Shown here: piece after piece, positions 7,327 to 63,889 of the stretch | Layout: every line of letters begins with the position of its first letter | How positions within the stretch are numbered: the stretch's first letter is position 1 | DNA from: Botryllus schlosseri | Lineage: Eukaryota | Reading direction: 5' to 3' | Length of the DNA: 64,000 nt | Assembly (NCBI GenBank): GCA_051294905.1 | Contig: CM119371.1 | Span: 13,888,001-13,952,000 of the forward strand | Notes under the pieces: generated by a model | Database searches by the model: none | What the model was told of the DNA's origin: nothing | What the model saw: the letters and a program-made list of their open reading frames with translations, nothing else | Position numbers and translations under genes: made by a program

Positions 7327-7329
7327 AAG

Positions 7330-9383: not shown

Positions 9384-11013
9384 ATGGTGCAGATTGCGTG
9401 TCCAAGTGTGGAGAAACATGCCGTGAAGATGATGGAAGAATTACATCGAATGAAGCGAGATAATGAACAATGTGATTTCATAATTCAAGTAGGAGATGAT
9501 GTCTATTACACTCACAAAAATGTATTGTCGTCTGGTTGTGATTATTTCAAAACAATGTTGAAGCAAGACACTAAGGAGAGTCGTGAAGGAAAAGTTGTTT
9601 TCAAAGATGTGGATTCCGAGTGTGTGAAAAGTTGCATCGATTTCATATATATATTCCGGTAAATTTGATATGACTGATGACAAGATGAATGATCTTCTTC
9701 ATGTCGCGATCATGATGCAGCTGGAAGATGTGAAACAGGCAGTATCTGATATATTGGAGCAATCAATTACTGTAGAGAATTACTTTTCGACAACACAAGC
9801 TGCCGATATGTACGGACTGGATGCCGTCTCTACGCCATGTAGAGTATTTTTTCAGGAAAAGATCATGGAAATATCAATGCAACCTGAATTTGGAAATATC
9901 AAAAAGAAGGACATCCTAGGTTTTGTGACGTCAAAATCAAAATTATGCGAGGAAGAAAAGCTAACGTTATTACTCAATTGGGTCGAGAAAAACCGTGAAA
10001 ATGAGAAACATTTGCGCAACTGTCTTGAAGTGATCAAGTTAGACAAAATTTCGCCAGCATTTTTAGAACATCTTCTGGAATCAAACCTAATTATCAGCAA
10101 TAACTTTGGATTGTACAAGTTGATCAATGGACATCTTCTGAAAGCTTCAAAAAGATTGGAGGAATCGAGAGAAGAAATTGACTCTGGTGATTTGATAATT
10201 CTTTTTGATGATGACGAGGATTGTATCCGATCCCTCAATCCAATAACCGAGAAAGTAGAGAAGTTCCATGATGAAAAGTTCGAGCATTTGCAACTTTTCG
10301 AGACAATTTTTCTGGACTCATACATTTATGTTTTATGTAAGGATAAATCTGTTCATCGACTCGATTGCCGAAGCAAAAATTCAAAATGGGAAAGAATGAA
10401 AGATATGATTTGTGACCATGGAAGATTTCCTCGATCTGTTTCATGGTCAGGATCAATATTTGTTGTTGGAGGAAGTTTTCCCAAAGCAACAAATGATGTG
10501 GAAACATTTACTTCTTCCCTAAATCAATGGTCTCAACTGCAAAACAAACCTACAGCAATTAGTGATGCAAGTATTGTATCATTGGATGATTCCATTTATT
10601 GTATTGGTGGTATGGGAGAAGATTGTGTCAAAGTTTCTTCATTCTGCAGATTCACTCCATCCTCATCAGAGTGGGTTGATCTCGAGCCAATGAGATATTC
10701 TGTGTCGGAATGTGGTGTTGTTGCAGTTGACAAAAAGATTTTTGTGTTGGGTGGTTGCAGCGGAGAGATCGAAGTCGACTACGTATCATGTTACGATGTT
10801 ACTTCAGCTCAGTGGACTTTATTGTCTTCTATGATTTCTGGTCATGGCATTTCTTCTGCTCATCACATTGACAACTGGATTTATGCAGTAGGATACGGAG
10901 AAATCTCTGATGCTATTGAAAAGTATGATGTCTCAAAAGACAATTGGATTATAGTGAAACCAAAAGTTGATCGATGTTTTACAATTTATGAATCCACATT
11001 TGTAAAAATATAG
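9384..11013 (+). pseudogene. BTB-BACK-Kelch gene A1, frameshifted in the BTB domain
   Basis: ORF 9363-9662 (CDFIIQVG, HKNVLS, CDYFKTML) and ORF 9670-11013 (BACK plus Kelch GG repeats) are joined by a +4 (AT)5 expansion at ~9645-9654, where intact paralogs have (AT)3. Confidence 0.9.
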
Positions 11014-12946
11014 ACTGTACTGATCTAAGACATGAATATAAATATTTTTTATCACAATTTAAATTTTCCAGTTGTCTGTTCTATCAATGCTACAATTGAT
11101 CATGCTATTTCCATCACAATTACATTGTAATTTGTTCATTTTGTTGTATCGAATCATTGCAATAGTGACTTTACTTATGTGGCTTTTTATCAGACCATGT
11201 TTACTTTTAACTTTATAATTCAATTCGCCACTTCTCGCTTCAGTTTTTCAGATTCTGTCGAACGTAACGTAATTTGGGGTGAATTTGTATAATTTATGAA
11301 TTGAATTGAAATGCTGTCATGAAATTTTGTGGAAATACACTTCATAACCCAGCCTACCAAAGTGCAATGGGGTGACATTGGAAATAGTTTGACTTACTTT
11401 GTTCTTTACTCAATATGTGTATTGTAAATGATATTTGATGACTTGAGAATTCGATTCCACAATTCCTGCGTGGCCGATCTCAATAGTGAATGATTTTTTA
11501 AACTCGTATCCCGCCATTTCCGTTATAAATAGTCCAAATCATCCAGTATATGGAAATTTCAATGAGAGTGAATTGTCTCGTTTCCTTGTTTAGATGCATT
11601 CGATGATTGTTAACCGATTGGCACAGGCGGGTTTTTTCAAAAACTCTGCTTCACTTTACAAAACTGAAAAACACGACCTCAACGGGATGCGAAACCAACA
11701 AGCATACATCGTTGGATTCAAAATGTCAACGCATAACCAACTACGCCACGAAGCAAGACGAGTGCAATCAACCGCGCGTGTATACAATCCAGAAGACAAG
11801 AAAACGTTGTTCTAAACATGTACATGTTTTGCTTACTTCCTTATAGAGTCCACAACGTATACCTAGTGCGAATAAGTACGTGCTATTCACTGCGACATAG
11901 ATAACATCTTTCGAACAAGCCATGAGTGACTGCTTTTGCCTAACTTACGTGATCTATACTATCAAAAAACTGTGGATCGTTTCACCATAATCCACTGTCT
12001 GACTCGTGGGTCAGCGGGGTTGCAGGTTTATAACTTATTGTGTATGATTGTGAACCCTATTGATTGCAATTCCAGTCATTATAACCAGGGCTTTGGAGCA
12101 GCCGTAAATTTGCATTGCTCCAGCTCCGGCTATCATACAGTAGCTCCGGCTCCGGCAATTTACCTATCTACCAACTGGTCTACGCAATGATTTGTTTTGA
12201 AACATTAAAATTGGTTCATATTGGCACGTACATTAATGTCTGACAATTTTCGATTCAGGCGAATGATAGCCTTAAGCCATTGACAATCAGTAATGAGGAT
12301 TCAGAATATAGTTGTATGAAAATAATCAGTGAATTTCCTTATCAGAACCCATTTATCCGAGGTATTCATTTTTATGACACATTTATTTACAATTTCTTAT
12401 TTCCAGGTGTCTCTTCTGAAAGACGAGGAAGATGTAAAGTTCGAACAATGAAGGTTGCATCCCACGTGTGTCAATAACCGTAAGTAGTTGTAGAAATAGA
12501 AGAGTTCGGAACAAAGTCATCCATCTCGGAAAAAAGTTACAAAGTCAAGTGGTGGGCAAACTAGAGCCAGCGGGTCACATCTGACGCGTGACAATAATTT
12601 GTGGGACGGGCGAAGGCATCGGCAATTGCAATAAAAATATTGAGAAATATTTTATTGTTGGTGTAATAGCCCATCCTCAGGACCAACGTATTTCGAAACG
12701 TTTCGGTTGCTAAACACCCAAAAAATCAAAACTCAAATAACTTAGTTCTGATCACAATTGTGATTTTAGATTAGAACTCCTACTTTCAGTGCTGTACTTG
12801 GAAAAAGCGGTTCAGGAATGCGTTTTAGATTCGTCCTCTATGTGCAGTTAGGTGCAAATCACTCATAAATTCGGTCTCAACTCATCCATAATGAGTAGGG
12901 TGATTTTTTTGGGTTGCCCGACATATGAGCATGCGACACAATGAAA

Positions 12947-14673: not shown

Positions 14674-17600
14674 TAGGGTTGTCCAAAATTTGAAAAATTT
14701 CGAAAATGCTGCGTTGTAATGTCTTATTCTATAGATTATTGATTAAAAACATCAACAAGCCTGAAAGAAGCTCTCAGGAACGTCGTTAAGATTTCTTACA
14801 AAGCGTTTGAAAGTAGCTGCCAAAGACTGGGCGGGCCACCGACGGCGAAATTGCAACTAGGCGGGCAATGACGAAACCACGATTCTTGATTGGGTAATCG
14901 GTTATGCTTCAATGATGACGGCGGCTGTCAGCTCTGATTTGGGTGCTTCACCGTGTTTGACAGAAGGAGTAGGTTTTGCTGCTGCTGAGTCTGTTGGTGA
15001 CGGCTGTAATACTGTAAAAGCGTGTTGTGGTTTGATGAGTCAATAGTAGTAATGTAACAGTGGTTCTTCGAATGTATCAGTTGTAGCAGTAGTTTCTGTT
15101 TTGCGTAGGTCGAGTCTGTTAGTAGAGACGGGAATTTGTAAAGCGCATTGTGGGTTGATGCATCAATAGTTGTAATGCAACACTTGTTCCTTGCTCAATG
15201 TTTTAGTTGCAGCAGCATTTTCTGTTCTGATGAGGTCGATTTTGTTAGTAGTGGTTGTGGTTATGTACAAGGGCATTGTGGGTTGGTGAGTTAATAGTCG
15301 TAATGTAACACTTGTTACTTAAATGTTTTAGGCGTAGCTGTAATTTATGATAGAAGGCAAAAATATTACTGTCATGGCAGAGGCAAAACGGCGGAAGACT
15401 GTGCACTTGCCACAGAGAAGAACAAGATCTCGATCTGAGCATTACTTGGTCGGATATGCTTGCGATTACATCTGTGGCTCGAGATTACCAACCTTGCGAG
15501 AAGTAATGAGTTACTTTCTGCATCTGAAAGACCATTGCCCTCAGTCAACCCCTACTCGTGAGCTATGTAATGTGGTGGTTCATGATGTCATGACAGTGTG
15601 GCAAATGGCGAGAATTGCCACAATACTTAAAGGAAATGCGGTGAAATTACTTGAAAAACTGAACAAAAAATATATTTTTCTGAAGGCGACCATGAAACGG
15701 GAAAGTGATCCCAAGGGTAAGAGGAAAAAATTCACGGAAGATTTGGACAAGTTGTGGGATATTGGAAGTACAGATGCGATAGCAATAATACAAAATGACA
15801 TTTATCTATCACATGATAGAAAGCTCGAAGACATTGCATTCTATGAAGATCAACAGCAATCTCGCAAATGCATAATGTTGGGAAGAGACAAGATTCTCGC
15901 TAAAGACATCGAAAAGAAAACAGCAACCATGGCGGATAGAACTGTTAAAAACATTCAACATGACTATGTTGTTTTAGCATCTTCTTCATCTTCAAAAGAG
16001 GGTGATAGTTTGAGTTCAAGTTCTGATTATGATGCTGATGTTGGTCTTGGCACCTCGACAGCCATTAAGCTGATGGCACCTAAAAATATTATGAATAATA
16101 CCCATGTGTCCCAAGCTCTGGATCGATTGCAAATAACAGACAACAATGCTGATCGGAGCATTTATTACGGCTTGTGGCGGTGACATAGCAATGTTCTCTC
16201 TGTCAAGATCTTCGACAAAGAGAGCCAGGGAAACAAATCGTCTTGAAATTTCCAAGGATATTTCAGAAAAATTTGCAGAAAATAAACCTCAACATGTTGC
16301 TATTCATTGGAATGAAAGCTCACAGAGGATAGATTAGGAAATCGGTATGAGGCTCTGTCAATTGTCCTATCTTGTCATCCTCAATACTCAGAAGGAAAAC
16401 TACTTGGCATTCAAAAGATGCAAAATGCTGCAGGTCAGACGCAAGCAGAAACCACTTTCAACATAATTGAAAGTTGGAATATAAAAGATGCTGTAACAGC
16501 TTTGGTTTTTGACACTACAGCAAGCAACAGCGGCTGGAAGAAGGGTGCGGCAAAGATTCTTGAAGACCTTCTAGGAAGGAAGGTGTTCTACCATGCATGT
16601 CGGCACCATGTGTATGAGCTGGTAGTGAAAGACGTTTGGAAATCTTTATTTGGAAAGGCCACAACTGGACCAGAGAATGCATGGTTTGCCCACCTTAAAA
16701 GGAACTGGAGCAGTCTTGACAGGGAACAGCAATTCAAGACTCTGACTATTCCTCTATGTTTTGCTGAACGAGCTGCAATGATAGTTGATAAGTTCAAGCT
16801 ACTGTTGAACAGAAAAGATTTTTTCACACGGGATGACTACAAGCAATGTGTGACTAATGCTCTTGCTCTTCTCGGTGCAGATGAAGATATACGTCATCAC
16901 AAACCTGGTGCAGCACACCATGCGAGATGGATGGGTACAATTCTGTATGCTCAAAAGATGTTCATGTGGGCCGACCAATTAGATTACAAATCTGAAGAAG
17001 TTGAACTGCTGCGCCGCTTCAATTTATTTTTGGTTCTCTTTTATATCCCTGCGTGGGTGGATTCAAGCATTGGTCGTGATGCAGCTGGTAATGACTTGAG
17101 ATTCGTTCAGCACATGTTGAGTTATAAGGAATATGATGAGCAAGTTTCCACAGCTGCTTCACGAAAGCTTTTGAAGCACGACTGGTATATTGTTGAGGAA
17201 ACCGCTGTATACGCCTTGTTTTCACCGACGGAAAGCAAGGAAACCCGGGAAAATATGGCAAAGGCGCTCCTGCAAGTAGAGCGAACTTCCAGTTTCAGAA
17301 GGGGCCCACCCTCATTGAATGCAACTATACAGATCAACAAGGACAGTACGTTGTCTGACCTTATTGGGCCCCAGTCGTGGTACATATTTGAAGTTTTTGA
17401 ATGCTCTGGGGATTGGCTGCGTCAACCGGTTGATGATTGGCACTTTTCAGATTCATTCAATAAAATGAATTGCTACGTTAGTTCTGTCAAAGTCGTTAAT
17501 GATGCCGCAGAAAGAGGTGTCAAGCTAAGCACAGACTATGCTGCAATCTTGACTGACAATGAACAGCAAAGAGACAGTTTGCTTCAAGCTGTGGAACAGC

Positions 17601-18356
17601 ATAGGAAGATTTTTGGAGACAGCAGGAAGTCTACTCTTATCAAAGGCCAGTGATCTGCAACACTGACCCTGCGATATACTTTTTAATGATGCCTTTTGTA
17701 AATATCATTTTTGCCTTTGTTAAATCTTGAATAAAAAGTGTAATATGCGTTCGTTTTAGAGAGAGACGTCGACTTACCATAACAAGCCATAAGGAGAAAT
17801 TGACTACTGGTTTGCAATTTATGAGTTACAGTCGTTGTCAACTGGTATGTTTTAGAAGGCTCGAAGGTAGCACGATGCATGCATCTAGTTCATTCTTATC
17901 TTAATTGGCCAAGCTCCTGTGCAAGAAGTAACAAAACTGTTATACACAGTGTTCAGGTAGAAAATATATTACTGGATCGTTATGCTGTTGTCGATGGCAG
18001 CATTAACAACGTCAATTTACCATATCGCCAATGCCACGAACAGAAATGGCTGCAAACCAACACAACAGAGTAGAACGAAATCGTGACCAGCAATGATCAC
18101 AAAATCAGTATTTCAGCCAATCAGTAGCTTATTATTACACGTTCCAACCAATCAAAATTCTAGGTTCGTGATTGCCCGCCCACTTCATCGATTCCCCGCC
18201 CACATGCAGACGGCTACTTTCAAACGCTTTGTAAGAAATCTTAACGACGTTCCTGAGAGCTTCTTTCAGGCTTGTTGATGTTTTTAATCAATAATCTATA
18301 GAATAAGACATTACAACGCAACATTTTCGAAATTTTTCAAATTTTGGACAACCCTA
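14674..18356 (+). mobile_element. hAT-superfamily (hATm-like) DNA transposon
   Basis: 144-bp TIRs (14674-14817 and 18213-18356, one mismatch seen) starting TAGGGTTGTCC. Perfect 8-bp TSD ATGTCCAC. Internal transposase. Confidence 0.93.
15347..17653 (+). pseudogene. hATm-like transposase broken by two frameshifts
   Basis: Three overlapping ORF pieces (15347-16183, 16146-16337, 16418-17653 with upstream extension). Motifs HW(D>N)G, FDTT, ACRHH, NDAAERGV. The first catalytic Asp codon reads AAT. Confidence 0.85.
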
Positions 18357-21300
18357 ATGTCCACATGTTAATATGTCTCTGTGCTCATGTGTCTACATGC
18401 CCACGAGTCGCCATGACCAAAAGTCGCTATGCTCAAGTGTCGCATGCTCAAGTGTCGCATGCTATTGTGTCGCATGCTAATATGTCCACGGACCATTTTT
18501 TTGACCTGAAAACGAAAGATTTTGACCTAAACAATCAAAATTTTCAACACTTTTTTACCTAAAATAAATTTTGACCAAATTTAGACCTCACAATAGGTCT
18601 ATGCAAATTTGGTGTTTTCGCACACAATGTTAAAATTGCACCACTTATCTTCATTTCTGGTTGGAACTGTATGTCCTTACAAAGTAGTTTGGCCCGAAAA
18701 ACGTTTTTGACTTAAAAACTGACAAATTTTTACATGAAAGAACTTGTATTTTTACGAAATCTGGCCGCATGAAGAATTCCGGTATTACATCACGTATTAT
18801 GGTAGAAATAATTAAAATTTGTTGCAGTACAACAACGAAAGATACTTTTCTCGGGTAGAAAGTGTCTGTCCTTACTAAGTAGCTTGCCAGAAATGGAGAA
18901 AGAATGTTCAACAGCAGCAGTTGTTTGCTGACAATACTTAAGTTGTGCGTACACTTCTGGTGACACACCGTGTTGCTTCATTCCGACAATGTTGTCTACA
19001 ACACAACTATTCATCAAATCAAATGATATTTCCGTCATATCTCATGATGGGTCGCACAATGAAACATACTAAAAGTGGGGAGTAAAAGTAAAAGTGGGTG
19101 GAGAACTGCAATAGTTTGGAAAGCACTGATTTAAATGATGTCATCACAGCCTAAATCATAAACAATATTCGTACTGCAATATCAAATGATCAGTTGGTAT
19201 CTGTCAAACATCTGATGTCTGTCTGACGGACGTACCTTAGGCTTTAAGATCAATAAATTCTGATTTTCTGTTTTCACCCAATCAATGATTTTGTATTCTA
19301 GTATGTGCCTATTTGTGCCACTACCTTTAACTAGACTAATTCTGTATGTAACAAGAAGTGTCAATGCATTGGGTGACTGCAAAGTTAGAATTTGGATTGT
19401 GTTCTAAATTGATGTATTCTTTTTTGACTACTTATTGGCGTTGCCATATTTTGGCATCCGGCAACAAAAGCACTTTTTGAAAACCACACAAAAAGGTCAT
19501 TTTTTTCGGCTCGACTTCCGAATGACCCTCTTTATACTGTAGTGCTCTGGTGTTGTCTAAAAAAGAACATTTTTCAGACCTACTCTCGAATGACTCGTCC
19601 TGAAATCTCCGTTGCAGAAGTCGCTCCATTTATGGCGTTTTTCAGTTGTGCCCGTTCCTTAGCCTGGCTCTCAAATCTATAAAGGAGGACCGATTCAAAA
19701 ATAGGAGGACACTTAGGTGTCCTTGGAGGGTATTTTCGATTTCCAGAAGAAGGAGGGCAAACTTATACGACATAATGAAATAGTCATATTTTTAATCCCG
19801 GTACTTAAACGTTTCTATACAAAATTACTTACTTTTGACACTCAGATTTGGTATAGTAGAAAGTAGTTTTGGGACACTGTGTGAAATTTTCCAAATCGAG
19901 CGACTGTGATACATATTTGATCACCTTAGGAATGCTCAACAATGTAAATTACGGCCAGCTACACCGTTTTTGTGCGGCCCGCGAAAGGCTTAAGTAACGT
20001 AGTAACAATATTGATAAATGCTTACTAAAAATCTAATTAGGCTGCTTCAGGGACTCCATTAAACTTTTTATTTTATATTTCATCACGATAATTATGTTAT
20101 ATTCTTACTATGGTGGATTTTTATTTCATTGCTTTCGCGATAGCTCGACCTCAAATACCACGCAGGTCAAAATTTTTCAACTGTTGAACATCACAGAAAG
20201 TCAAAACAGCAAGTTTATTACTTTTAGTTGCATACTTGAACTATATTTACAAAATCGATATAATTTAGTCGGAGCGCATTTCAAGCTGACATAGTTATGA
20301 CACTGTCAGCATTGTACAATCGAATAGTGTATTCATACTGAAATGAACCCGGATATTTTCGGCTGACACTCGTCAGGGGTAATCGTGAGCAACTAGTTGA
20401 GAATTGGAAAGAACATTGTCTATCAACAATCGTATCATAAAATATGATGTCACCAGCATGAAATTTCAAATGAGAGAGCGTTCAATGTACTATTTTTAGG
20501 TGGTACACGAACTCCTTTTGTTGAACTTTGGTTGGTGTATTTTTATAAAAGTCGACTCCAAGGCACCCAAATGGAAGTGTGAATGGCCCCTCCTGACGAC
20601 ACCACATCTGTCGTCTCGATAATTATTCGCAAAAATCGGTTCATCCAGCAGATGTTTGCCGACACACACGAGTACATCATTGTAACATCATAACTACAGA
20701 ATAAGTAAATCAAAGTGAAATACGCCTGATTTTCTTCACGAAATGAGAGTCTCCGTAACATTTTTGTATTCAAGATGGAACAACTGCTAAATTTTGTTGT
20801 TCTTTTGTCCAAGTGACATTTAAGAATTGGAGTGAAGAAGTGAAGTCTATTTTTTCAGCCGTGTAATATGAGATTTTCCTTCAGGCTTTGTCTCCTGCCA
20901 AAAGACAAGATCTCGATATCAGGATTTTCAGAATCATGATGACTTCAGGTGAGCCTCTATGAAGCACTGTAACATATTCAGAGTCGGCAGCAGAGTAACT
21001 AATATATAGCAAACATTCTGTCCAAAACGTTGAAAATTTCAGTGTCAAATTAGTCAATTTGAATCCCATGCTATCTCTTGTAACGTTTTGCACTCTTTCC
21101 CATCTGCACACTCAATATATTCACCCAACGTATGCCTACATCCCGCATGTAGGCCTACTCATTTCTAAGCTTACACAGAAATAATGCGATGAATATTGCT
21201 CTCTGGTTTCCAATAAATTCGGGTGTAGGTGTCGTGAAAAAATAAGCACTCCACCCCACACTTTTTACCCGCATCTTACCAAGCCGCCTGTCAAATTTAA

Positions 21301-21420
21301 TAGATACCTTGTAGACTTCTTTAATAAGAGAGTTTTTTTCCAAATATTTGTACCGTAGTAATGGAGTACTATGAAAAGGAGAAGTACTTATTAATGATCG
21401 TATCTGCCAGCTGCTACTAG

Positions 21421-21720
21421 TGGCCGACAAGATAGCGTAATGGTGGAAAGTCCGGCTGCTTGATTGGTAGATCGATCCCTGGCCAGGTAACGCCAATGAC
21501 CTTATTGGTAACACTGCTATTCATGACTCCCCCACTTGGCGCTCAACATTACCTGGATAGCATGCAAGGGTGGTGCAAGACTTCGACAGCCTTACAAGGG
21601 TATATCTGCACCTCCCTTGTCCAGCAGCATATGCACATCACTGACTCATGGTATGCATATGCACAGGTTGTGTGGTATATATCATGTGTCGGTGGCAAAG
21701 ACATACATTCTATTCTGTTT
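21421..21720 (+). mobile_element. Old tRNA-derived SINE
   Basis: A box TAGCGTAATGGT, degenerate B box AGATCGATCCC, and CTTGGCGCTCAACA resembling the core of the 25520-25765 SINE. Duplicated at 42480-42790. Confidence 0.5.
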
Positions 21721-21779
21721 GATTTTTTCTTCCTACTTTTTTGGTTTCATCATTCAAGAGAAACTACTATAAATATTGA

Positions 21780-22400
21780 GTTGGCTAAAAATCAAGTTCA
21801 ACCATCTCATCAATGTATTGTATATTTTTCACAGCTACTTCATGGGAACACATCATTTTGCAGCTTCATCCTCGGGTAAGGATTGCATTTCTTCATAGTC
21901 AGTATATCCTCTGAGTGTATCTTCGGTTTAGGTTAAAAACTCAGGATTGGATCATACCAGGGCGTCTACCTTTAGCCTGACTTGGAATCAAGGACCAAAA
22001 CATGTTGCAAGACTCTGTCTCAAGCTTCAGTGACATTTTCCAGCAACACCGTGTTAAGACTTCGTAATTTATATTCCTCACATGAAACAAATTGACAATA
22101 AATTTCAGTGACTACTCGATGAGTTCATTAGGAGTGAACATTTCAACAAGAGTCGGCTACGTTGTATCGAATAAGTTGTTTAAGGTTCTGAAATGCTTGG
22201 AACGTACATCGATTGATTTCAAGAAATCCTGATATGTCGGTCTTGCACAGTCCAAGACTTCTTATTATGCTTGAAGGGCTTCAAGGATGCATATGTGAAC
22301 AAAAAACATTCCACACTAGAGTTATGTTTTAGGTAGAACATCCAATAACAATCCAACATCTTAATTCATCAACATCAGAATCACTATCCAGAGAGGAGAT
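21780..22400 (-). mobile_element. Decayed RTE-like LINE C-terminal remnant
   Basis: Minus-strand fragment W..IPSQAKGRRPG resembles the RTE ORF C-terminal W.P..G.R..GRP motif. Duplicated at ~42840-43290. Confidence 0.35.
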
Positions 22401-22824
22401 TTGCAAAGGCGAGTACATCACAGAACCAGACTTGCACAACTGCAAATTACAGCAGTAGAATTATAGCAACACACTTTCTTCCAAATTAGATTAGAATTGC
22501 TGAATTCGTACAGCAAACTTGGGTTGCTTTGTACTATACAGTTTTCCTGTAGCATTTCCAGGGAAATCAGAAATTACATTAGAATTAATGCTTAGAATCA
22601 TTTTAAAAATTAGAAGAGAATTAGAGCAAAAAACGGTTTGACGAGTTAGTTTACTGGCATTTCGCTGTAATTTAGTCTAAAAACGTCTTGAAAACTAGAT
22701 TATTTAGCTGACCAAGACCAAGTTTGTACAGGACACAGGGCATGTACAAAGTCAAAGCACACGAGAAAATGTTTGGCAACAATTAATGGTCATATAGAAC
22801 CATATCAATTCAATTTACTATTAC

Positions 22825-23020
22825 AATTTCAATACACCACAAGACTGTGATACAATGAAAAGAGGAGGTGTCGAAGATATGGGGTAGTCTTTGAAATCAG
22901 ACACCCACCCGGGCCTGGGCGATGTAAAAAGGAAGCAGCACACTGAACAAAAAGTGAAAGAAGATAATACAAAAGGACAGGCAACAAAAAGAGGTGGAAT
23001 GCGAGAGAAGGCAAGTTCGA
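22825..23020 (-). mobile_element. LINE 3' UTR fragment just downstream of gene B1 (sister copy at 44535-44750)
   Basis: Same GGCCT(A/G)GGCGATGTA...CACACTGAA module as 3860-4080 and 43345-43560. Confidence 0.55.
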
Positions 23021-23056
23021 TATGTTAGATCGTGGTATGGTAAACTTGAGGCCTGA

Positions 23057-24664
23057 CTATATCTTCACTATTGCAGATCCACAGATACCGAAAGATTGAT
23101 CTCCTTCCATGGTGATGCTACACCATCTTTTCTTCACTAAATCATATTTTTCAATGATATCAAGCTGAAAGTCAAACGTATCCAGTACAAAAATCCAATT
23201 GCCGATGTGATAAGCGGTGTTGCGTCCATGATCAAAATTCATAGATGACAATGAAGTCCATTGAGCTGAAGTAACATCGTAACATTCTACATTGTTGATA
23301 TATCCTCCACTCAACCCACCTGTCACAAATATCTTTTGATCGATTGCAACCGCACCGCATCCACAAGTAGGATATCTCATTGGTTCGAGGATAACCCACT
23401 CTAATGAGGATGGAGTAAATCTGTAGAATGAAGAAACTTCAAAGCCATCTTGTGTTTCACCTCCGATACAATAGATTGAATCATTCAATGATACAAGACT
23501 TGCATCACAAATTGCCGTAGGCAAGTTTCCCTGTGGAAACCATTGATTGACTGAGGGGTCGAATCTTTCCACATCATCCGTTACTAATTTTTCGCTTCCT
23601 CCAATGAGAAATATGGAAGCGCAAAATAACACTGAGCTAGGTAGCCCACCGTGGTCACAAATCATATCTTCCATCCTTTGCCATTTTGCGTTTTTTCTTA
23701 CAACATCGAGTCGATGAACTGATTTATTGTCGCATAAAATATAAATATACTGGCGATAAGAAATCATTGAGAAACGATCTTCATTGACCATCTTTTCGTT
23801 GTGAAACTTGGTTATTTTCTCTGTTCTTGGATTAAGGGATAGAATACAATTATCGTAATCATCAAATATAACCATTAATTCTTTTCTCTCAATTTGTTCA
23901 ACTGAAAATTCCGGAAGATGTCCGGTAATCAACTTGTACAAGTGCGAGTCGTTTCTGATAACAGGGTAAGTTTCTAGAAGTTGTTGTAAAAATGCAGGAG
24001 GAATTCCATCACACTCGATCAATTCTAAAAATTCATGCAAATATTCCTTCTTTTCACATGTCTCGATCCACCTGAGCGATAACTCTAGTTTTTCTTCTTC
24101 CAATAACTTCCGATTTGAGACCTTTAAAGAACTTAAAACGTCAGCTTTTTCAACACTGCCAAATCCAGCTTGGCTTGCAATTTCCATGATATTTTCTTGT
24201 AAAAACATTCGGCATCTCAAAGCAACATCGACCAGCCCATAAATATCAGCAATATTTCTTGTAGAGAAGTAGTTGTCAACAGTGATTGATTCCGCCAAAG
24301 TATCAGATATTGCATGCTTTACGTCTTCCAACTGCAGAATGATTGCGACGTGAAGAAGTTCAATGTTTTTCCCGTCAGGAATCTCAACTTTACTTGAATA
24401 TATAAAATCGATGCAATTTTTCATACACTCGGAATCTACATCTTTAAAAACGATTCTTCCTTCACGACTTTCTTTCGTGTCATGCTTTAGCATAGCTCTG
24501 AAATAATCCGAACCAGCCGACAACATATTTTTGTGGGCGTGATAGACATCATTCCCGACTTGAACTATGAAATCACAATGATCTTCATCTTGTTTCATTC
24601 GATGTAAGTGCTCGAGCATCTTCACTGCATGTTTCTCGACGTCTTGACAAACAACTTGCACCAT
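23057..24664 (-). CDS. BTB-BACK-Kelch protein B1 (KLHL-like), intact, 535 aa from the first ATG
   Basis: Single uninterrupted ORF. BTB (CDFIVQVG, AHKNMLSAGSDYFRAML), BACK (TVDNYF, IMEI, EEEKL), Kelch repeats IFLIGG, IYCIGG, IFVTGG with YD...W. Confidence 0.95.
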   Translation of the reverse strand: MVQVVCQDVEKHAVKMLEHLHRMKQDEDHCDFIVQVGNDVYHAHKNMLSAGSDYFRAMLKHDTKESREGRIVFKDVDSECMKNCIDFIYSSKVEIPDGKNIELLHVAIILQLEDVKHAISDTLAESITVDNYFSTRNIADIYGLVDVALRCRMFLQENIMEIASQAGFGSVEKADVLSSLKVSNRKLLEEEKLELSLRWIETCEKKEYLHEFLELIECDGIPPAFLQQLLETYPVIRNDSHLYKLITGHLPEFSVEQIERKELMVIFDDYDNCILSLNPRTEKITKFHNEKMVNEDRFSMISYRQYIYILCDNKSVHRLDVVRKNAKWQRMEDMICDHGGLPSSVLFCASIFLIGGSEKLVTDDVERFDPSVNQWFPQGNLPTAICDASLVSLNDSIYCIGGETQDGFEVSSFYRFTPSSLEWVILEPMRYPTCGCGAVAIDQKIFVTGGLSGGYINNVECYDVTSAQWTSLSSMNFDHGRNTAYHIGNWIFVLDTFDFQLDIIEKYDLVKKRWCSITMEGDQSFGICGSAIVKI

Positions 24665-49641: not shown

Positions 49642-50698
49642 CATTACACTATCTCGCTCGTTAGCGTTTCAGAAAGTCAAGTTGTGCAGGCGGGCTTATA
49701 GCGACTGATCCAATAATATTAATAAGTGCAGAATAAAACAAATTTTGTTGAATAATTAAACTAAGTTGGTCCAGGGTCATGAAGTAAGTGCGACCTTGTC
49801 CTGAATGATTGCTATCGATTTAACACTGATCTTTCTTCCATAGGTTGGCGCCAATTGATCACGTGCGTCGTGCATTTCTGTTCGAAGTTCGATACGAACC
49901 AGACATGGCCCTCCGTTGCTGATCAGACCATGACCACTTCCAGTCACGCCCCACGGATTGGTTTCAAAAATTATGAAGAGGGTGGAAATTCTCGTTTTTG
50001 TCTGTCTCATAGTCCCAGCAAAAATGTAAAGGCCTATAAAAATTGAGGAACTTATCGTATTTTTGCCTCCTTTTAGCATCGAGCAGGACAGGTGGGTCCT
50101 GATTTCGAAGATTACCTTAAGTCTTTTCGACAACTCTCTATCTTTCAATATCTTTCAATATCGCAGTTTCGTGGTGTATCGAAATTATGAAATTGTTAAC
50201 AATTAATTGATTTGAAAAAAGTCCCACTTCCACTACCATGTACAGTACATTGTACACACGTCACTAGATGGCGGGAATAAGTGGAAATACAAACGTGGGA
50301 TTTCCCTCGGTCGAACCATCATTCATCATCGGTCATGCTTTTCCTCCATGGTTCTGTTGTTCAGTTGAAGCAGTAGATTCAGATAAACAACCTTCTATTC
50401 GTGACAACAACAAGGATGTTACTGTCAAAAGTTGTTTTAGTTCGCACATGTCTCTAACGGCACTATGTCAATTGTGTCTAGTTGGATTCTAACTATTTCG
50501 TTGGATGAAAGGATTAGCGACCTCATGATGATGAGTTGCTGCACTTATAGAAGATCCCTTTCGGATAAGGCCTATACTTGGAAATATATCGAGTATACAT
50601 CTATTACACTGGACAAAAACGAAAATTCATTATGGTAGGTGAGAACGATTTTATGGTAAATCATGGACGGTGAGCTCGAAAATGGCATTGGTTTCTGC

Positions 50699-51123
50699 CA
50701 GGGTTGTAAACAAGTCACAAGGCTCCGAGTCAGGGGTCAATCTCACTTTTATAGTTTTGACTCGAGTCAAGTCGAGTCATTTTAAAATCACCAACGAGTC
50801 AAGTTCGATTCCAAGTCAATGAGCAGGGCGTTTAGTCAGAGTCATGGTATTATGACTCGGGTCCGAGTCCAAGTCATTGTGTTGACTGATCTTTCTCGAG
50901 TTAACGTCTTGTTAAACTCTGTTTGGTGATATTGAATGGTTCGCATTTACAATATACTAATGGCGGTATGAGTCCCGGTCTTATATGACTTGGTTCAAGT
51001 TATGCGCAATGACTCGAGTCAATAGACAGATTGACTCGAGTCGAGTCAATTCTTTGTTTTGAGAAAATGACTCGAGTCAAGTCGGGTCATAAGAAAGTCG
51101 TTACTCGAGTCATTACAACCCTG
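50699..51123. mobile_element. hAT MITE with GACTCGAGTC subterminal repeats
   Basis: TIRs CAGGGTTGTAA and TTACAACCCTG. Flanks GTTTCTGC and GTTCCTGC match at 7/8. Only the left end survives in copy 1 (28637-28700). Confidence 0.75.
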
Positions 51124-53122
51124 GTTCCTGCAGATTAGCTCTATTTTTCAAGATATCACCGAATTTGGACATTCGTATATATTTTAATTTGATTGAAACT
51201 CGGTTAAATTTTATCCTAACAGCCTATATTAAATGTGAAACCATGAGAATGTGAGAAAATGTAAAACACAATTAGATCGGCGGAACGAAACTGCTGCATA
51301 AATCTATTCTTTTCCAAATATCGAACACAAAAATACCCCATTTATCCGTATATTCCTCGGATTCTCCTAATAGATTGTAATTTGTGACAATAAGCTTCCT
51401 GTACCGATCAATGAGTTGAAGTGAACAATAATAGCAGTAATTCGGTAATAACAAATCAAGTATGCCTGAACCTACAAAAAGACAACAACTTGTAAACAGA
51501 CGAAATAAACAAGCAAGCAATATTTGTGTTTACCAAGTCATCTGCAGGAAAGTCCTGTTGTACGATTTTGATGGGGACAGATTCGCGATTGCCAGCTGGC
51601 GATAATCATTCACAATGTGAGCATCACAACTACCTTGGTATTTCTCTTCCATTTGTTTGATATATAGAAGAAAAATTCCACCTCGTTCCTTACTCGTTTA
51701 TAGCCGGATTTTAGGGTAGCCGAAGAGATGATACTGAACTTTTATGCTCATGCTTATCCTTGATCAAAGAACAATCATGACCATAACCTCCACGTTATCC
51801 TCAGAGCTTCTTTTTTGTCGTCTCAACACAAGTCAAGACCTTCATTGTTATGCTGATCTCAAGTACAAGACGTTGGTTGGTAATAATGTTGAGGAGTTTT
51901 AATGGATTTTCTACAGCATATACTATTGTCATCTACATCTACCACTACATCCTATATAGTAGCAGTACTCGAAATCAGGTCTGGCAGGGACGTAAAGCTT
52001 TCAACTGGAATTTCGGAGTAATGGGTAATTGGCTGTAAAGCAGAATCAATGTCGAAGAAGTGCTATGACTCGTAGTTTTGTTCCAACCTTACATCTCATT
52101 CATCAATCATGATGGCGGCTCTTTGGCTCGTACAAAACTACAGTGATTACAAATCGAATCATTTAGACTTTACCTTGAGTCCATAAGCGCAAACTTTTAG
52201 CCGAATGTTGGCAGGCCGTTTGCCGTGCCCGACGTTTATCTTGATCTCACAACATCATACCAAAGTGCTCCTTGTAAGTGCACTTGGTGACATTTCACGT
52301 ATGGAATTCTTCATGTTCAACGTGTTCTTGTAACATATGTAGCAAAACAAATTTATGCTATTTATCACTTACTCTGTCTATTTATCTCTGAATTTTTAAC
52401 ATATATGTTCATTAAAACACCCATGAATTGCAATTTGTGAAAATATAATAGCAAGGGACACTATCCAATATTAAAATGAGTCGGAAAGCCTGTTAAATTT
52501 GATCCGACTAATCATCGGTGTAAGATGAGTGCTATTTGACTCTTTCTGTAGAATAAATGAGGGGGGTGTTAATTGACGTAATCTGACAGAAAATTGTCTC
52601 TGAATGGTCATTTTCAGGATAAAGCTAACTATTGCTTTATCGGTGCACTGCCTACCATCGTTTCCAGTCTGGCTGACTATGAAAGAGTGAAATATGGGCC
52701 CATAACAAGCAAGCAAAGTCATTGCAACGCTGTGTCTCACTCGAGGTAGAGTACCAACAATCCTGCAAGGTTCAATTCAATTTGGTATTACTAGGTGACA
52801 CCAGCGTATCAATAACAATCGAAACTTGTGTGGGATGAAGCGATTTAGTTGATACTGAACACTTGATGACTTGACAATGACTCGTAAATTTTCCTTCGAG
52901 TCACTAGTCAATTCTCATTTCCAAAACGTACAGTCAGGTTAAGATATTCTTGCAAACTGACTCGAGTCAAGTCATGACTTGAGTCACCACAACACTGATT
53001 AATATTTGTTTATTTGTTTACTTGCAGTGTATGAATGTGGTACAATATCCGTTAATATATAATCATGTTTACTTTCAGAACAATACTAATCTCTATATAT
53101 CGCTCGCGAGTGATTGGTGATC

Positions 53123-54736
53123 ATGGTGCAGGTTTTATGTCTAGATGCGCAGAAACGTGCAGTGAAGATGATGGAGGAATTATATCGAATGAAGCAAGAT
53201 CAAGATCATTGTGATTTCATAGTTCAAGTCGGAAATGATGTCTATCACACCCACAAAAATGTATTGTCGGCAGGTTCGGATTATTTCAAAGCCATGTTGA
53301 AGTATGATACAAAAGAGAGTCGCGAAGGAAGAGTTGTTTTTAAAGATGTCGATTCTGAGTGCGTGAAAAATTGCATCGAGTCTATATATTCCAGTAAGTT
53401 TGAGATTCCTGATGGAAAAATAATTGAACTTCTCCACGTCGCTATCATGATGCAGTTGGAAGATGTAAAGAATGCTGTATCCAAAATTTTGGCGGAATCA
53501 ATTACCGTTGAGAATTACTTCTCTACAAGAAATGTTGGTGATATTTATGGACTGGATTACGTCTCTTCAAGATGCAAAATATTTTTGGACAAAAATATAG
53601 TGGAAATCGCAACCCAAGATGGAGTTAGAAGCATGGGAAAAAATTACTTTCTCAAAGTTTTGAAGTCGACATATATGGAATTATGGGAGGAAGAAAAGGT
53701 AGAGTTATCACTCAAGTGGATCGAGGGATGTGAAAATAGAATGAAATATTTATATGAATGTCTCGAATTGATAGACTTTTACAGAATCTCTCCGACGTTT
53801 TTGCAACATCTAGAAATTAACCCCATCATCAGGAATTACTGCAAGTCACACGAGCTGATCAGAAAACCTCTCCAGGAAGGGTCAGATGAAGCGGTAAAAC
53901 AGAATGAATTGATGATTCTTTTTGATTGGGAAACAGATTGCATCCGATCATTTAATCCGATTTCTGATAAAATAAGTAAGTTACACAGTGCCAGGTTTAG
54001 GCATTTCGATTTATTCAATACAATTTTACTAGACTCGTATATTTACATTTTATGCCGAAATAATTCTTTTCATCGACTCAATTTCTGAAGAAAAAATTCA
54101 GAATAGCAAAAGATGGAAGGACTGATTTGTGACCATGGGATGTTTCCATGCTTGATGTCATTGTCTGGATCCATATTTGTCATCGGAGGAAGTGATGCAA
54201 GAGAAACAGACTATGTGGAACGATTCGACCCTGCAGTCAATCATTGGTTTCAACTGCAAAACAAACCTACAGCAACTAGCGATGCACGTCTTGTAGCATT
54301 GAATGATTCTATTTATTGTATCGGAGGTCGGGAAAATGGTTACCAAGGCTCCTAACTCTGCAGATTTACTCCATCTAAATCAGAGTGGTTTGACCTCGAA
54401 AAGATGAGGTATCCTGTACGTGTGAATCGCTGCAGTGCTGTTGCAGTTGATCAGGAGATATTTGTCATCGGTGGGGGGAATGGAGATGAGACCATCAATA
54501 ACGTAGAGTGTTACAATGTTACTTCAGCTCAGTGGACTTCATTGTCATGGACATATAAATGTCTTTGTTGCGTTGCTGCTGCTTACGCAACTGGCAAATG
54601 GATTTTTGTAGTAGACCAGTCTTACGACTCTACTGATATTAAGAAGTATGATTTATCAAACAACAAATGGTATAACATCGATCTGAAAGTACATGAATAT
54701 CCCACGTTGTGTGGCTTTGCAAAGGTCAATGTATAG
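53123..54736 (+). pseudogene. BTB-BACK-Kelch gene C2 with three in-frame premature stops
   Basis: ORF pieces 53114, 54113 and 54404 share one frame. TGA 54086-54088, TAG 54104-54106 and TAA 54353-54355 sit at codons that are sense in the paralogs. Confidence 0.92.
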
Positions 54737-57325: not shown

Positions 57326-58965
57326 ATGATGCAAAATGTATGTTTGGATGCAGAGAAGCACGCAGTGTCTATGATGTCTGAATTGCATCGAATGAAGCAA
57401 GATAACAATCATTGTGATTTCATAATTCAAGTTGGAGATGATATCTACCGTACCCACAAAAATGTATTGTCGGCCGGTTCCGCATATTTCAGAGCAATGT
57501 TAAAATACGACACAACAAAGGGTCGCGAAGGAAAAGTTGTTCTCAAAGATGTGGATTCTCAGTGCGTGAAAATTTGCATCGATTTTATATATATTCCGCA
57601 AACTTCCAGATTCCTGATGGAAAAATCATAGACCTTCTTCATGTTGCAATCATGATGCAGTTGGAAGGTGTGATGCAAGCCTTATCCAATATTTTGGCGG
57701 AATCAAATACCGTTGAGAATTACTTCTCAACCAGAAATGTTGGTGATATTTATGGACTGGCGGATGTTTCTTCGAGATGCAGAATATTTTTAGGAGAACA
57801 CAACATGGAAATCGCAAACCAAGATGGATTTGGAGCTCTTGAAAAATATGACCTTCTCAGTCTTATGAAGTCGGGAAAATTGAAATTATGCGAAGAAGAA
57901 AAGCTTATGTTATCCCTCAAGTGGATCGACAAATGTCAAAGCAATAGCGAATGTTTGCAAGAATATCTCGAAGTAATCAAGTTCGATCAAATCTCACCGG
58001 TGTATTTGCAAGGGGTTTTAGAAACTCACCCCCGTATAAGTAACGATTTCGAGCTGTACAAGTTGATAAATAGACATATTCGTAAAGCTTCGGTCGAGGC
58101 AAAAGAAGAAAGTGATTCCGATAAATTGATAATTCTTTTGGATTTGGGCCGAAAACGGCTGCGATCCTTCAACCCAATAACCGAGGAAGTAGAAAAGTTC
58201 CATGATGCAAAGATTAAGTTCTCGTCGCCTTTTACAGCGACTTCCCTTGACTCGTACATTTATGTCGTATGTGAGAAGAAATCTGTCTATCGTCTCAATT
58301 TTCTTGACAAATATTCGAAATGGGAAAAAATGGACAGTATGATTTGCAACCATGGTATCTTTCCTCGCTTGATTTGTGCGACAGGATCCATATTCGTCAT
58401 TGGAGGAGGCTATCCTACCGCAACGACTGATGTGGAAAGATTTGACCCATCTGTAAATCGATGGATTCAACTGGAAAATAAACCATCGGCAATTTGTGAT
58501 ACAAGTCTCATATCATTGGATGATTCAATATATTGTGTGGGAGGTGGAGGACAAGATGGCGCTCAAGTTTCTGCATTCTGCAAGTACACTCCATCGTCAT
58601 CAGAGTGGGTTGACCTCGAACAGATTAAATATCCTGTGGCTAGGTGTGGTGTTGTTGCTGTTGATCGAAAGATATTTGTTATCGGTGGGTGGAATAGAAG
58701 AGCGAGTCTCAATAACATGGAATGTTACGACGTTACTTCGGCACAGTGGTCTTCGTTGTCGTCGATGAATTCTTATTGCTGTTGGCCTTCCGCGTATCAA
58801 ATCGGCAACTGGATTTATGCAGTAGATTGGAACGGCTATGTTCGTATTGAGAAGTATGATTTATCGCACAAAAAATGGTATAACGTGGAATTGAATGGGG
58901 ATCAATCTATCTTGGGCTTCGGATCTGCAATTGTGTGGGTAAAGTCACAGAGGATGTCAAGGTAG
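57326..58965 (+). pseudogene. BTB-BACK-Kelch gene A3, frameshifted in the BTB domain
   Basis: +2 (AT)4 expansion at ~57587-57594 separates ORF 57308-57631 from ORF 57562-58965. The rest of the gene is open. Confidence 0.9.
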
Positions 58966-62281: not shown

Positions 62282-63889
62282 ATGGTGCATGTTGCTCGGT
62301 ATGATGTCGAGAGGCGTGCAATGAAAATGATGGAGGAATTACATCGAATGAAGCAAGATAAGGCTCATTGTGATTTCATAATTCAAGTTGGAAATGATGT
62401 CTACTACGCCCACAAAAATATTTTGTCGGCCGGTTCGGATTATTTCAAAGCCATGCTGAAGCATGACACAAAGGAGAGTCGAGAAAATAGGGTCGATTTC
62501 AAAGATGCTGATTCTGAATGTGTGAAAAATTGCATCGATTTTATATATTCAAGTCAATTTAAGATTCCGGATGGAAAAATTATCGAACTTCTTCACACTG
62601 CAATCATGATGCAGTTGGAGGATTTAAAGAAGGCAATATCCAATATTTTAGCGAAATCAATTAATGTGCAGAATTACTTCTTCACAAGAAAAGTTGCTGA
62701 TATATATGGACTGGTTGATGTCACTTCGAGATGCAGACAATTTTTACACAGAGATAATTTGCACATCGTAGAGCAAGCTGAATTCGGAAGCGTGCAAAAC
62801 TTCGACCTTCGACCTGTTTTGAAGTGGGCTGAATCCAAATTATGGGAGGAAGAAAAACTAGAGTTGTCGCTTCAGTGGATCGAGACATGTGAAAATAAGA
62901 GGGAATATTTGCATGAATGTCTCGAATTGATCGACTTTGAAAGAATATCTCCGGCAATATTGGCACGTCTTCTAGAAACTAACCCCATTATCAGGAATGA
63001 TTCCAAGTCGTACGAGTTGATTAACAAACATCTTCTGGAAGCGCAAGATGGAATGGTGAACAAAAAAGAATTGATAATTATTTTTGATAATGACACAGAT
63101 TGTATTCGATCCCTTAATCCTACAACCAATAAAATAACCAAGTTCCACAATGCAAGGTGTATGTATATGAATTGTCTCGCAACGATTACTCTGAACCCGC
63201 ATATTTATATTTTATACCATCGTGAATCTGTTCATCGGCTTGATTTTTTAAGAAAAAATTCCAATTGGGAAAAGATGGAAGATATGACATGGAACCATGG
63301 ATTTTACCCTCCGTCAGTTTCGTTGTTGGGATCAATATTCGTTATTGGAGGAAGTTATTCTGTAAAAACTAATGTTGTTGAAAGATTTGACCCCTCAGTA
63401 AATCGATGGTTTCAACTGCAAAACATGCCTACAGCAATTTGCGCTTCAAATCTTGTATCAATGAACGATTCAGTGTATTGTATTGGAGGTTATCTCGATG
63501 GCGTCCAAGTTGCTTCATTCTACAGATTTACACCATCCTCATCAGAGTGGGTTGAACTCGAACCAATGAGATATCCAGTGCATGGGAGTGGTGCTGTTGC
63601 AGTTGATCAAAAGATTTTTGTGATCGGCGGTTTGACTGGAACAGAGCAACTCGACAACGTAGAATGTTACGATGTAGCTTCAGCTCAATGGACTTCGTTG
63701 ACATCGATGAATTTTAAACATGGTTTCAATTCTGCTTACCAGACCGGCAATTGGATTTTTGTTGTAGATGAGCGTGCCCGCTCTAATTTTATTGAGAAGT
63801 ACGATTTATTGAACGAAAAGTGGTATTGCATAGGAAAGTTAACAGATCGATCTTTGAGACTCCGCGGATCAGCAATGGTGAAGGAATAG
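62282..63889 (+). CDS. BTB-BACK-Kelch protein E, intact, 535 aa
   Basis: Uninterrupted ORF with BTB (CDFIIQVG, AHKNILSAGSDYFKAML), BACK and Kelch repeats (IFVIGG, VYCIGG, IFVIGG). Confidence 0.95.
   Translation: MVHVARYDVERRAMKMMEELHRMKQDKAHCDFIIQVGNDVYYAHKNILSAGSDYFKAMLKHDTKESRENRVDFKDADSECVKNCIDFIYSSQFKIPDGKIIELLHTAIMMQLEDLKKAISNILAKSINVQNYFFTRKVADIYGLVDVTSRCRQFLHRDNLHIVEQAEFGSVQNFDLRPVLKWAESKLWEEEKLELSLQWIETCENKREYLHECLELIDFERISPAILARLLETNPIIRNDSKSYELINKHLLEAQDGMVNKKELIIIFDNDTDCIRSLNPTTNKITKFHNARCMYMNCLATITLNPHIYILYHRESVHRLDFLRKNSNWEKMEDMTWNHGFYPPSVSLLGSIFVIGGSYSVKTNVVERFDPSVNRWFQLQNMPTAICASNLVSMNDSVYCIGGYLDGVQVASFYRFTPSSSEWVELEPMRYPVHGSGAVAVDQKIFVIGGLTGTEQLDNVECYDVASAQWTSLTSMNFKHGFNSAYQTGNWIFVVDERARSNFIEKYDLLNEKWYCIGKLTDRSLRLRGSAMVKE

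Follow-up and report, generated by a model that had tools for sequence, protein, structure and literature searches.

What does a run of eight BTB-BACK-Kelch genes on one chromosome of the tunicate Botryllus schlosseri represent: ordinary ubiquitin-ligase adaptors, a variable recognition locus, or the debris of a spent expansion? BTB-BACK-Kelch proteins are typically Cullin-3 substrate adaptors. Tunicates, the closest living relatives of vertebrates, are without antibody-type immunity, and to our knowledge the means by which they recognise diverse intracellular threats are largely unknown. The explanation that we consider best, with a probability of about two in three for the whole of it, is a lineage-specific family of dimeric Cul3 adaptors with a constant scaffold and a diversified top face, growing by birth and death.

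The window analysed here, a 64,000-nt stretch of contig CM119371.1, holds exactly eight full-length copies as determined by tblastn with intact copy E as the query (Table 1). Together with the ORFs, this search confirmed the four intact (C, D, E, H) and four disrupted paralogs counted in a preliminary description of the locus. The broken copies A, B, F and G carry one to three lesions each, and these lesions are independent and recent. B and F are sister copies (85% nucleotide identity), as are C and E (86% at the amino acid level); none of the three stops of F recurs at the matching codons in B, nor does the single-base deletion of B recur in F (B's TGA was placed by alignment to E, and F was compared for the deletion only). 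The disruptions can fairly be called recent, as the frames past the frameshifts are still open over long distances (447 aa of BACK-Kelch frame in A and 467 aa in G). A family-wide check found the (TA)n frameshift in copies A and G only, which rules out this run as a family-wide hotspot.

Table 1. Features located in the window, in order of position.
Feature	Position	Strand	Remarks
Retroelement fragment (gag with zinc knuckle, protease, reverse transcriptase)	5512..8681	-	Pfam; beside copy A
Copy A, broken	9384..11013	+	+4 nt in (TA)n run ~9645 (codon 88, CIDFIYS motif)
Broken very high-copy, recently active element	15347..17653	+	no Pfam hit
Segmental duplication [C,B], first copy of two-gene segment	21000..31011	.	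colinear with 42071-54734
Copy C, intact, 535 aa	23057..24664	-	ATG-to-stop, one frame; BTB-BACK-Kelch
Copy B, broken	29401..31019	+	-1 nt at 30020 and one TGA ~30405
Copy D, intact, 536 aa	34343..35953	+	ATG-to-stop, one frame; chimera
Segmental duplication [E,F], second copy	42071..54734	.	colinear with 21000..31011
Copy E, intact, 537 aa	44799..46412	-	ATG-to-stop, one frame; query and folded copy
Pyrimidine tract and AG, candidate cis- or trans-splice acceptor	46460..46475	-	~48 nt upstream of E's ATG
Copy F, broken	53123..54736	+	in-frame stops 54086 (TGA), 54104 (TAG), 54353 (TAA)
Copy G, broken	57326..58965	+	+2 nt ~57586 (codon 87), same (TA)n run as A
Copy H, intact, 535 aa	62282..63889	+	ATG-to-stop, one frame

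Recent growth of the family clearly proceeded by DNA-level tandem segmental duplication and unequal crossover. The segments [C,B] and [E,F] are 85-93% identical at the nucleotide level, with insertions interrupting them. Copy D is a chimera, G-like in its upstream flank and BTB-BACK part (80-90% nucleotide identity) and A-like in its Kelch domain and downstream flank (87-95%), with the switch point at ~35100-35200. Close pairs have flanks in common, whereas distant paralogs have only ~110-150 nt upstream in common and nothing downstream. Taken with the independent, recent pseudogenisation, this bears out the idea of birth and death, in which members are lost through frameshifts and stops.

At the scale of the genome, the family comprises ~160 copies according to two independent DNA markers (158 and 161 matches; controls 0-2), and a hand count gave at least 101 distinct full-length places, ~90 of them stop-free with uninterrupted ORFs of ~540 aa. 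Most copies are grouped into three clusters of megabase scale on a single chromosome (contig C1, 6.5-8.1, 13.8-15.7 and 35.9-36.2 Mb), and the window is best explained as a piece of the family's oldest, most diverse cluster. The 26 copies sampled for a tree formed one clade, albeit weakly supported (bootstrap 54), with a 51%-identical protein from another sample as its sister. Close relatives in a collection of 15 billion proteins are singletons from read-archive assemblies; the nearest named ones, at 29-32% identity over the full length, are a 'kelch-like protein 28/3/5/30' group from Styela clava. This group, likewise from a tunicate, has the same length and architecture, yet it is multi-exon, forms a separate clade and consists of a handful of near-identical entries. 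No one-to-one vertebrate ortholog was detectable (20-25% identity). Copy number and tree thus agree with the lineage-specific expansion that had been proposed.

Every copy has its coding region in a single ORF. Since the nearest named homolog, from Styela clava, has at least 11 coding exons across 15.7 kb, the comparison indicates that the single coding exon is a derived state, which fits a retrocopy origin; the family would go back to a KLHL-type gene with several exons that gave rise to a processed copy. On the other hand, a run of at least 10 A within 600 nt downstream, as a potential poly(A) remnant, occurred in only one of 44 copies, the regions downstream of the copies revealed no pattern of a conserved poly(A) signal, and neither poly(A) tails nor target-site marks are left as signs of retroposition. 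Since erosion of such marks is to be anticipated, their absence carries little weight. Hence, of the earlier wording 'possibly retroposed', intron loss relative to the Styela homolog speaks in favour and the missing hallmarks speak against. 'Single-exon', in turn, applies to the coding region: every copy has a conserved acceptor-like YAG 32-65 nt before its ATG, which hints at cis- or trans-splicing of the mRNA.

Pfam assigned BTB, BACK and Kelch_1 to all long ORFs in the window. PF00651 (BTB/POZ) matched the N-terminus of all four intact copies (E ~1e-20 to 1e-21) as well as the N-terminal ORF of broken copy F, and PF07707 (BACK) followed the BTB domain in every copy tested; the AlphaFold2 model of copy E (pLDDT 87.6) has a helical region at 129-250. 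In this model, 24 strands build six four-strand Kelch blades. Its best Foldseek matches were the KBTBD2- and KLHL22-CUL3 complexes, its Kelch part aligned with the KLHL12 and KEAP1 propellers at TM 0.84-0.85 (normalised by target), and a profile search of the PDB returned KEAP1 (E = 5e-135). Architecture, fold and six-bladed propeller are therefore those of the vertebrate KLHL/KBTBD adaptors (KEAP1, KLHL12, KLHL22, KBTBD2). A BTB dimer like that of these proteins is predicted and may form: a BTB-BACK homodimer model scored an ipSAE of 0.65 against 0.26 for the best control, a score that may reflect the model's memory of solved BTB dimers, with the partner at pLDDT of at least 85 and three runs agreeing to 100%. 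Of the solved homodimers, 21 of 30 attained the mark applied, whereas none of 23 monomers did.

Four BTB residues, A57, M58, T63 and E65, are invariant across 44 paralogs, and, aligning them by hand with KLHL3 and SPOP, we take them to be Cul3-contact positions. A57, M58 and E65 presumably match KLHL3 A77, M78 and E85, where mutation breaks Cul3 binding; conservation at these hand-aligned positions would be a further likeness to the vertebrate adaptors. Counting against an adaptor role, all copies have a Thr (T-K-E) where the Cul3 'phi-x-E' motif calls for a hydrophobic residue. Homology and the invariant residues at the aligned contact positions suggest that family members may bind Cul3, and together with the fold and the dimer model they point to proteins that would act as dimeric Cullin-3 adaptors. 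The cullin genes themselves are divided into small exons in the B. schlosseri genome.

Selection was measured via independent sister pairs and a marginal-likelihood grid. A codon model yielded omega values of 0.23 for BTB, 0.32 for the Kelch strands, 0.38 for the bottom loops and 0.64 for the top loops. Across 19 independent sister pairs, pN/pS was 0.22 for BTB, 0.31 for strands and 0.90 for top loops, with pS equal everywhere; selection is strongly uneven along the protein. In a site test, the fit improved when dN>dS was allowed (2dlnL 59.2), and all 12 codons with a posterior of at least 0.9 for dN>dS fell in top loops (Fisher p = 3e-9). Individual sites had two to three times the amino-acid changes expected under neutrality. 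With gap-free columns the pattern persisted, but the gain was borderline (2dlnL 34.5 for 22 extra classes). Besides, recombination between paralogs, as in copy D, can inflate single-tree site tests, and, with a top-loop mean omega that stays below 1, relaxed constraint could explain much of the signal. With these qualifications, the sequence comparisons support diversifying selection confined to the top-face loops of the Kelch propeller alongside conserved BTB and BACK domains, in line with the earlier suggestion of variable recognition. In KEAP1, the corresponding loops bind substrate.

We thus envisage a BTB-BACK scaffold that would be held constant and a six-bladed propeller whose top face, the substrate-holding side in KLHL proteins, would be driven to differ between paralogs, so that each paralog would mark a different target for ubiquitination. 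As to these targets, our leading guess, a tentative one, is fast-evolving foreign or selfish proteins, such as those of viruses or of the genome's abundant retroelements. It is unlikely, though conceivable, that the copies form a germline-encoded intracellular recognition repertoire of an invertebrate chordate, in which each Kelch pocket is tuned to a different protein of viruses or retroelements, or to a zinc-finger protein that reads such elements and is matched to it by type, and delivers it to Cul3 for ubiquitination; crossover at the BACK-Kelch boundary would then shuffle recognition modules, and the family would use Kelch propellers in a role parallel to TRIM5-like restriction or the KRAB-ZNF system.

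Among known systems, the MATH-BTB genes of nematodes and grasses and the F-box genes of nematodes and plants make up large families that are specific to their lineages, arranged in tandem and subject to birth and death; their cullin-docking module is conserved, and positive selection acts only on the substrate-binding domain (PMC4091423, PMC8120010, PMC1257465). The Botryllus family resembles them in its large lineage-specific tandem clusters with pseudogenes and in its pattern of selection (with the caveat of recombination between copies), and differs in that the recognition module is a Kelch propeller rather than MATH or FBA/LRR and the host a chordate. Vertebrate genomes, by comparison, hold 25-50 old BTB-BACK-Kelch genes each, mostly conserved one-to-one (PMC1257465), whereas the Botryllus family consists of ~160 close copies with a single coding exon and a Thr in phi-x-E, and its substrate face appears to be under diversifying instead of purifying selection. 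Our literature search turned up no relevant account of a Kelch expansion in tunicates. We regard the family as a real and apparently undescribed form of expanded E3-adaptor family under adaptive evolution; it would carry the pattern seen in nematodes and plants over to a chordate and to Kelch propellers. With its conserved docking scaffold and positively selected binding face, it is a candidate variable recognition system that is concrete enough to test, and a clean natural experiment in propeller-pocket diversification. Even if the targets are host proteins, it would reveal at which Kelch positions change is tolerated and at which it alters specificity.

Neither expression of the family nor the link to defence that had been suggested is supported by the data. 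Two bulk RNA-seq runs gave hardly any reads for gene E, and the few reads fall where E and C are 95% alike. X10 and X6, two runs that may be RNA, were rejected as expression evidence on account of low depth over coding and intergenic regions alike. This near-absence of bulk reads would fit tissue-restricted expression, as expected if the genes were germline-restricted ampliconic adaptors engaged in sperm-egg or meiotic-drive conflict and not in defence. Testis-specific KLHL10 and ampliconic drive and suppressor genes would be comparable; megabase tandem clusters on one chromosome would suit such a family, and diversifying selection is also typical of reproductive proteins. No sequence feature points to the germline, however, and we regard a reproductive role as rather improbable. 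Similarly, the Kelch faces might co-evolve with co-amplified host partners, e.g. zinc-finger proteins that read transposon DNA, rather than with foreign proteins. The diversifying selection on these faces is compatible with type-matched partners, but a C2H2 finger motif occurs in no frame of the window and its eight copies duplicate without a zinc-finger partner, and we give such a two-component arrangement little credence.

Half of the copies in the window are dead, which counts against our preferred explanation of a diversifying adaptor family and would be natural for a largely neutral, decaying expansion, in which a retrocopy was amplified by unequal crossover amid abundant repeats and the mostly unexpressed copies, their loops unconstrained, are heading to pseudogenes. 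The near-absence of RNA and the top-loop mean omega below 1 can be read in the same way. Yet neutral decay would hardly leave BTB and strands as constrained as they are even between young sister copies, nor the many uninterrupted ORFs and the invariant BTB residues at positions aligned with the Cul3 contacts; nor does it sit well with the better fit once dN>dS is allowed and with sites that exceed neutral expectation. We accordingly think it improbable that drift and decay account for the family. Finally, descent from integrated and amplified BTB-Kelch genes of a large DNA virus is already disfavoured and hardly credible: poxviruses do have intronless BTB-BACK-Kelch multigene families that engage Cul3, and the Botryllus coding regions are free of introns too, but the nearest relatives are cellular tunicate genes, a splice-acceptor-like site is conserved upstream, no viral genes adjoin the copies and the clusters are of megabase, chromosomal scale.

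As regards mobile elements, the locus had been called TE-saturated, a description that our data support at individual places. No LTRs were found within 13 kb around the gag-protease-reverse transcriptase fragment, and Pfam searches of ten intergenic ORFs returned no match. The very high-copy element downstream of copy A is broken in the window, while intact copies elsewhere in the genome have a 776-aa ORF, and very high-depth repeats are present at 43200-43800 and 47200-47600.

The BTB-BACK-Kelch genes in this window of Botryllus schlosseri DNA belong to a large lineage-specific family that has undergone tandem duplication, recombination, and birth-and-death evolution. A tblastn search with the intact copy E as query recovered eight full-length copies from the window (A to H; see table) and nothing else of the kind, with Pfam matches to BTB, BACK, and Kelch_1 well over threshold. 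C, D, E, and H read from ATG to stop without interruption (535-537 aa), and the search and reading-frame inspection together confirmed the preliminary description of eight paralogs, four intact and four disrupted. The disruptions are indeed recent, as illustrated by the 447 and 467 codons that remain open behind the frameshifts in A (4 nt inserted at ~9645) and G (2 nt inserted at ~57586), respectively. Both insertions fall in one short (TA)n run within the codons of the conserved CIDFIYS motif (window positions 9640-9660 and 57580-57600), and A and G are the only two of ~163 copies genome-wide in which this run is lengthened, both residing inside the window. Slippage could account for these frameshifts, possibly as an on/off state that can revert; the alternative is a mistake in the assembly. 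Copy B lacks 1 nt at 30020 and carries one TGA, and copy F contains three in-frame stops. Since all stops of F are absent from its sister copy B (85% nucleotide identity) and the deletion of B is absent from F, the two genes died independently.

Family members and mobile elements in the window
Feature	Position	Strand	State or content
Copy A	9384-11013	+	broken
Copy C	23057-24664	-	intact
Copy B	29401-31019	+	broken
Copy D	34343-35953	+	intact
Copy E	44799-46412	-	intact
Copy F	53123-54736	+	broken
Copy G	57326-58965	+	broken
Copy H	62282-63889	+	intact
Retroelement fragment	5512-8681	-	gag (zinc knuckle), protease, reverse transcriptase
High-copy element	15347-17653	+	broken; two ORFs (278 and 411 aa)
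SINE-like repeat (putative)	43200-43800		
SINE-like repeat (putative)	47200-47600		

Similarity between close copies extends into their flanks, as for C and E (89% over 3 kb), B and F (85%), A and D (82%, sharing ~900 bp downstream), and D and G (76%, sharing ~620 bp upstream); distant pairs have just ~110-150 nt of upstream sequence in common. Positions 21000-31011, harboring C and B, are colinear with 42071-54734, harboring E and F, at 85-93% identity and with interrupting insertions, and hence represent a two-gene segmental duplication. Copy D is chimeric: its upstream flank and BTB-BACK region resemble G (80-90%), and from ~35100-35200, at the BACK-Kelch junction, through the downstream flank it resembles A (87-95%). 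Scaffold and recognition modules have therefore been recombined by unequal crossover or gene conversion, and recombination at this junction exchanges whole recognition domains between scaffolds. Together with the segmental duplication and the independent loss of B and F, the chimera substantiates the birth-and-death evolution that had been proposed for this cluster. The copies have no zinc-finger partner in the window, where C2H2 finger motifs were absent from every frame. In a nucleotide tree, the window copies fell into at least three deep lineages, and a cluster at 6.5-7.5 Mb of the same contig formed a single younger clade.

Within the 495.5-Mb assembly (the window being G000:C1:13888001-13952000), a protein search yielded 81 scored full-length matches with 55-100% identity, nearly all of them single open frames of 530-570 aa, and searching again with a Styela protein contributed ~20 further places (hand count). 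Two independent 20-22-nt markers from the BTB region, which detect broken copies too, gave 158 hits against 0 in the control and 161 against 2, respectively. Based on these protein searches and marker counts, the family comprises ~160 copies, ~90 or more of which are intact, and is thus expanded, as anticipated. Most copies lie in three regions of contig C1, which carries the window (6.5-8.1, 13.8-15.7, and 35.9-36.2 Mb), with a minor share on C3, C4, C5, C6, C12, C14, and C16.

Whole-gene dN/dS of close pairs ranged from 0.2 to 0.55. In KEAP1, the substrate is contacted by the B-C and D-A loops on the top face of the Kelch propeller. We assigned strands and loops from a structural model of E, checking the register against KEAP1, and compared partitions using a codon model on a fixed 44-taxon tree (omega) and 19 independent sister pairs (pN/pS).

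Selection by protein partition
Partition	omega	pN/pS
BTB	0.23	0.22
BACK	0.39	0.38
Kelch strands	0.32	0.31
Bottom loops	0.38	0.42
Top loops	0.64	0.90

Selection was strongly uneven between partitions, with pN/pS lowest in BTB and highest in top loops. The sister-pair pS was equal in all partitions (0.17-0.22), which argues against misalignment as the cause. Of the 30 codons with the most amino-acid change, 27 were in top loops. A FUBAR-like grid (55 alpha, beta classes; fixed branch lengths; no inferred ancestral states) placed dN above dS at 9.7% of sites, and permitting this improved the fit (2dlnL 59.2, 22 extra classes, p ~3e-5), a gain to be read in light of real recombination between copies, the fixed branch lengths, and a mean top-loop omega below 1. 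All 12 sites with a posterior of at least 0.9 (271, 294, 298, 341, 342, 404, 410, 452, 456, 457, 502, and 505) were located in top loops (Fisher p = 3e-9), with site 341 displaying 16 different residues among the 44 paralogs. When restricted to columns with a gap-free neighbourhood, top loops held six of seven such sites and the gain was borderline (2dlnL 34.5). The sister-pair contrast needs no tree and is the sturdier result. The family thus combines a conserved scaffold with a recognition face under diversifying selection, and each paralog may have its own single target.

AlphaFold2 folds E (pLDDT 87.6) into a BTB domain, a BACK domain made of helices, and a propeller of six blades with four strands each, closed by the C-terminal strand. 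The model's best Foldseek matches were full-length KBTBD2 and KLHL22, both in CUL3 complexes; the Kelch part of the model matched the propellers of KLHL12, KEAP1, and KLHL3 with target-normalised TM scores of 0.84-0.85, and a profile search of PDB sequences retrieved KEAP1 at E = 5e-135. The BTB segment DYFRAMLKHDTKES is nearly invariant across the 44 paralogs, and A57, M58, T63, and E65 are unchanged in all of them. By hand alignment to KLHL3 and SPOP, A57, M58, and E65 would correspond to KLHL3 A77, M78, and E85, residues whose mutation abolishes Cul3 binding. In the phi-x-E motif, the paralogs carry Thr at the hydrophobic 'phi' position. A BTB-BACK homodimer was predicted via the canonical alpha1/beta1 interface (ipSAE 0.65 vs 0.26 for the best control; partner pLDDT at least 85; 100% agreement between runs). 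This mark was attained by 21 of the 30 solved homodimers and by none of the 23 monomers examined, yet passing it could stem from BTB dimer structures memorised by the predictor. The fold, the invariant BTB residues, and the predicted dimer suggest that the family would act as Cul3 adaptors, with the Thr at 'phi' counting against this. Vertebrate KLHL proteins are closest in structure; in behaviour, the nearest analogues are the expanded MATH-BTB and F-box families known from nematodes and plants (PMC4091423, PMC8120010; overview PMC1257465). Literature searches turned up no comparable Kelch-based expansion described from tunicates.

Among named proteins, the Styela clava 'kelch-like' group is closest (29-32% identity). 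When 1.84 billion cluster representatives were searched exhaustively with HMMER, just one protein at 52% and a few at 40-44% came up before identities fell to ~30%, the close relatives all being singletons from read-archive assemblies. In a protein tree, 26 copies sampled from every cluster formed one clade (bootstrap 54), followed by a 51% protein as sister and then by 40-42% proteins, with the Styela group apart, which supports the previously suggested lineage-specific expansion. Every copy here is one ORF, whereas the Styela homolog P0002 has at least 11 coding exons across 15.7 kb; the one-ORF state is derived and is in keeping with descent from a processed transcript. This speaks for the retroposition considered earlier, and we infer a retrocopy origin of the family; no poly(A) remnant is left downstream of the copies, though such marks are expected to fade with time. 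At G000:C12:16830887-16836404, two neighbouring copies, each a single ORF of 594 aa, show the top identity to the Styela homolog (34-36%) and could represent basal members or stand near the founder copy.

The term 'intronless' holds for the coding region but is qualified by a splice-acceptor-like site upstream of all eight window copies. An alignment of 44 upstream regions revealed a conserved pyrimidine tract and AG, located 32-65 nt before the ATG in each window copy (e.g. 46460-46475 on the minus strand for E) and followed in C, B, E, and F by a conserved GTGATTGGTGATC immediately preceding the ATG. The sequence probably marks a splice acceptor, cis or trans, that would serve a 5' exon or the ascidian spliced leader.

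For gene E and its flanks, we sampled 6% and 13% of the reads of two bulk RNA-seq runs and found almost none on the gene, the few present lying within 45800-46199, a stretch in which E shares 95% identity with C; the flanking repeats were heavily covered. Transcription of E in the sampled runs is therefore at best very low, and tissue-restricted or induced expression is possible. Two older runs gave short low-depth contigs on coding and intergenic DNA alike and were taken as DNA.

Among the mobile sequences, neither an LTR pair within 13 kb nor an integrase ORF was seen for the retroelement fragment. The two ORFs of the high-copy element had no Pfam match; intact copies encode a 776-aa ORF, and a 99-100% identical protein occurs at 50 or more places across chromosomes (3552 candidates at first look). 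This mobile element has been active recently, and the protein it encodes is an unrecognised one. The two short stretches flanking E are covered thousands of times over in contig runs and strongly in RNA runs, and a tRNA-like sequence runs on from 47433; they look like SINE-like repeats.
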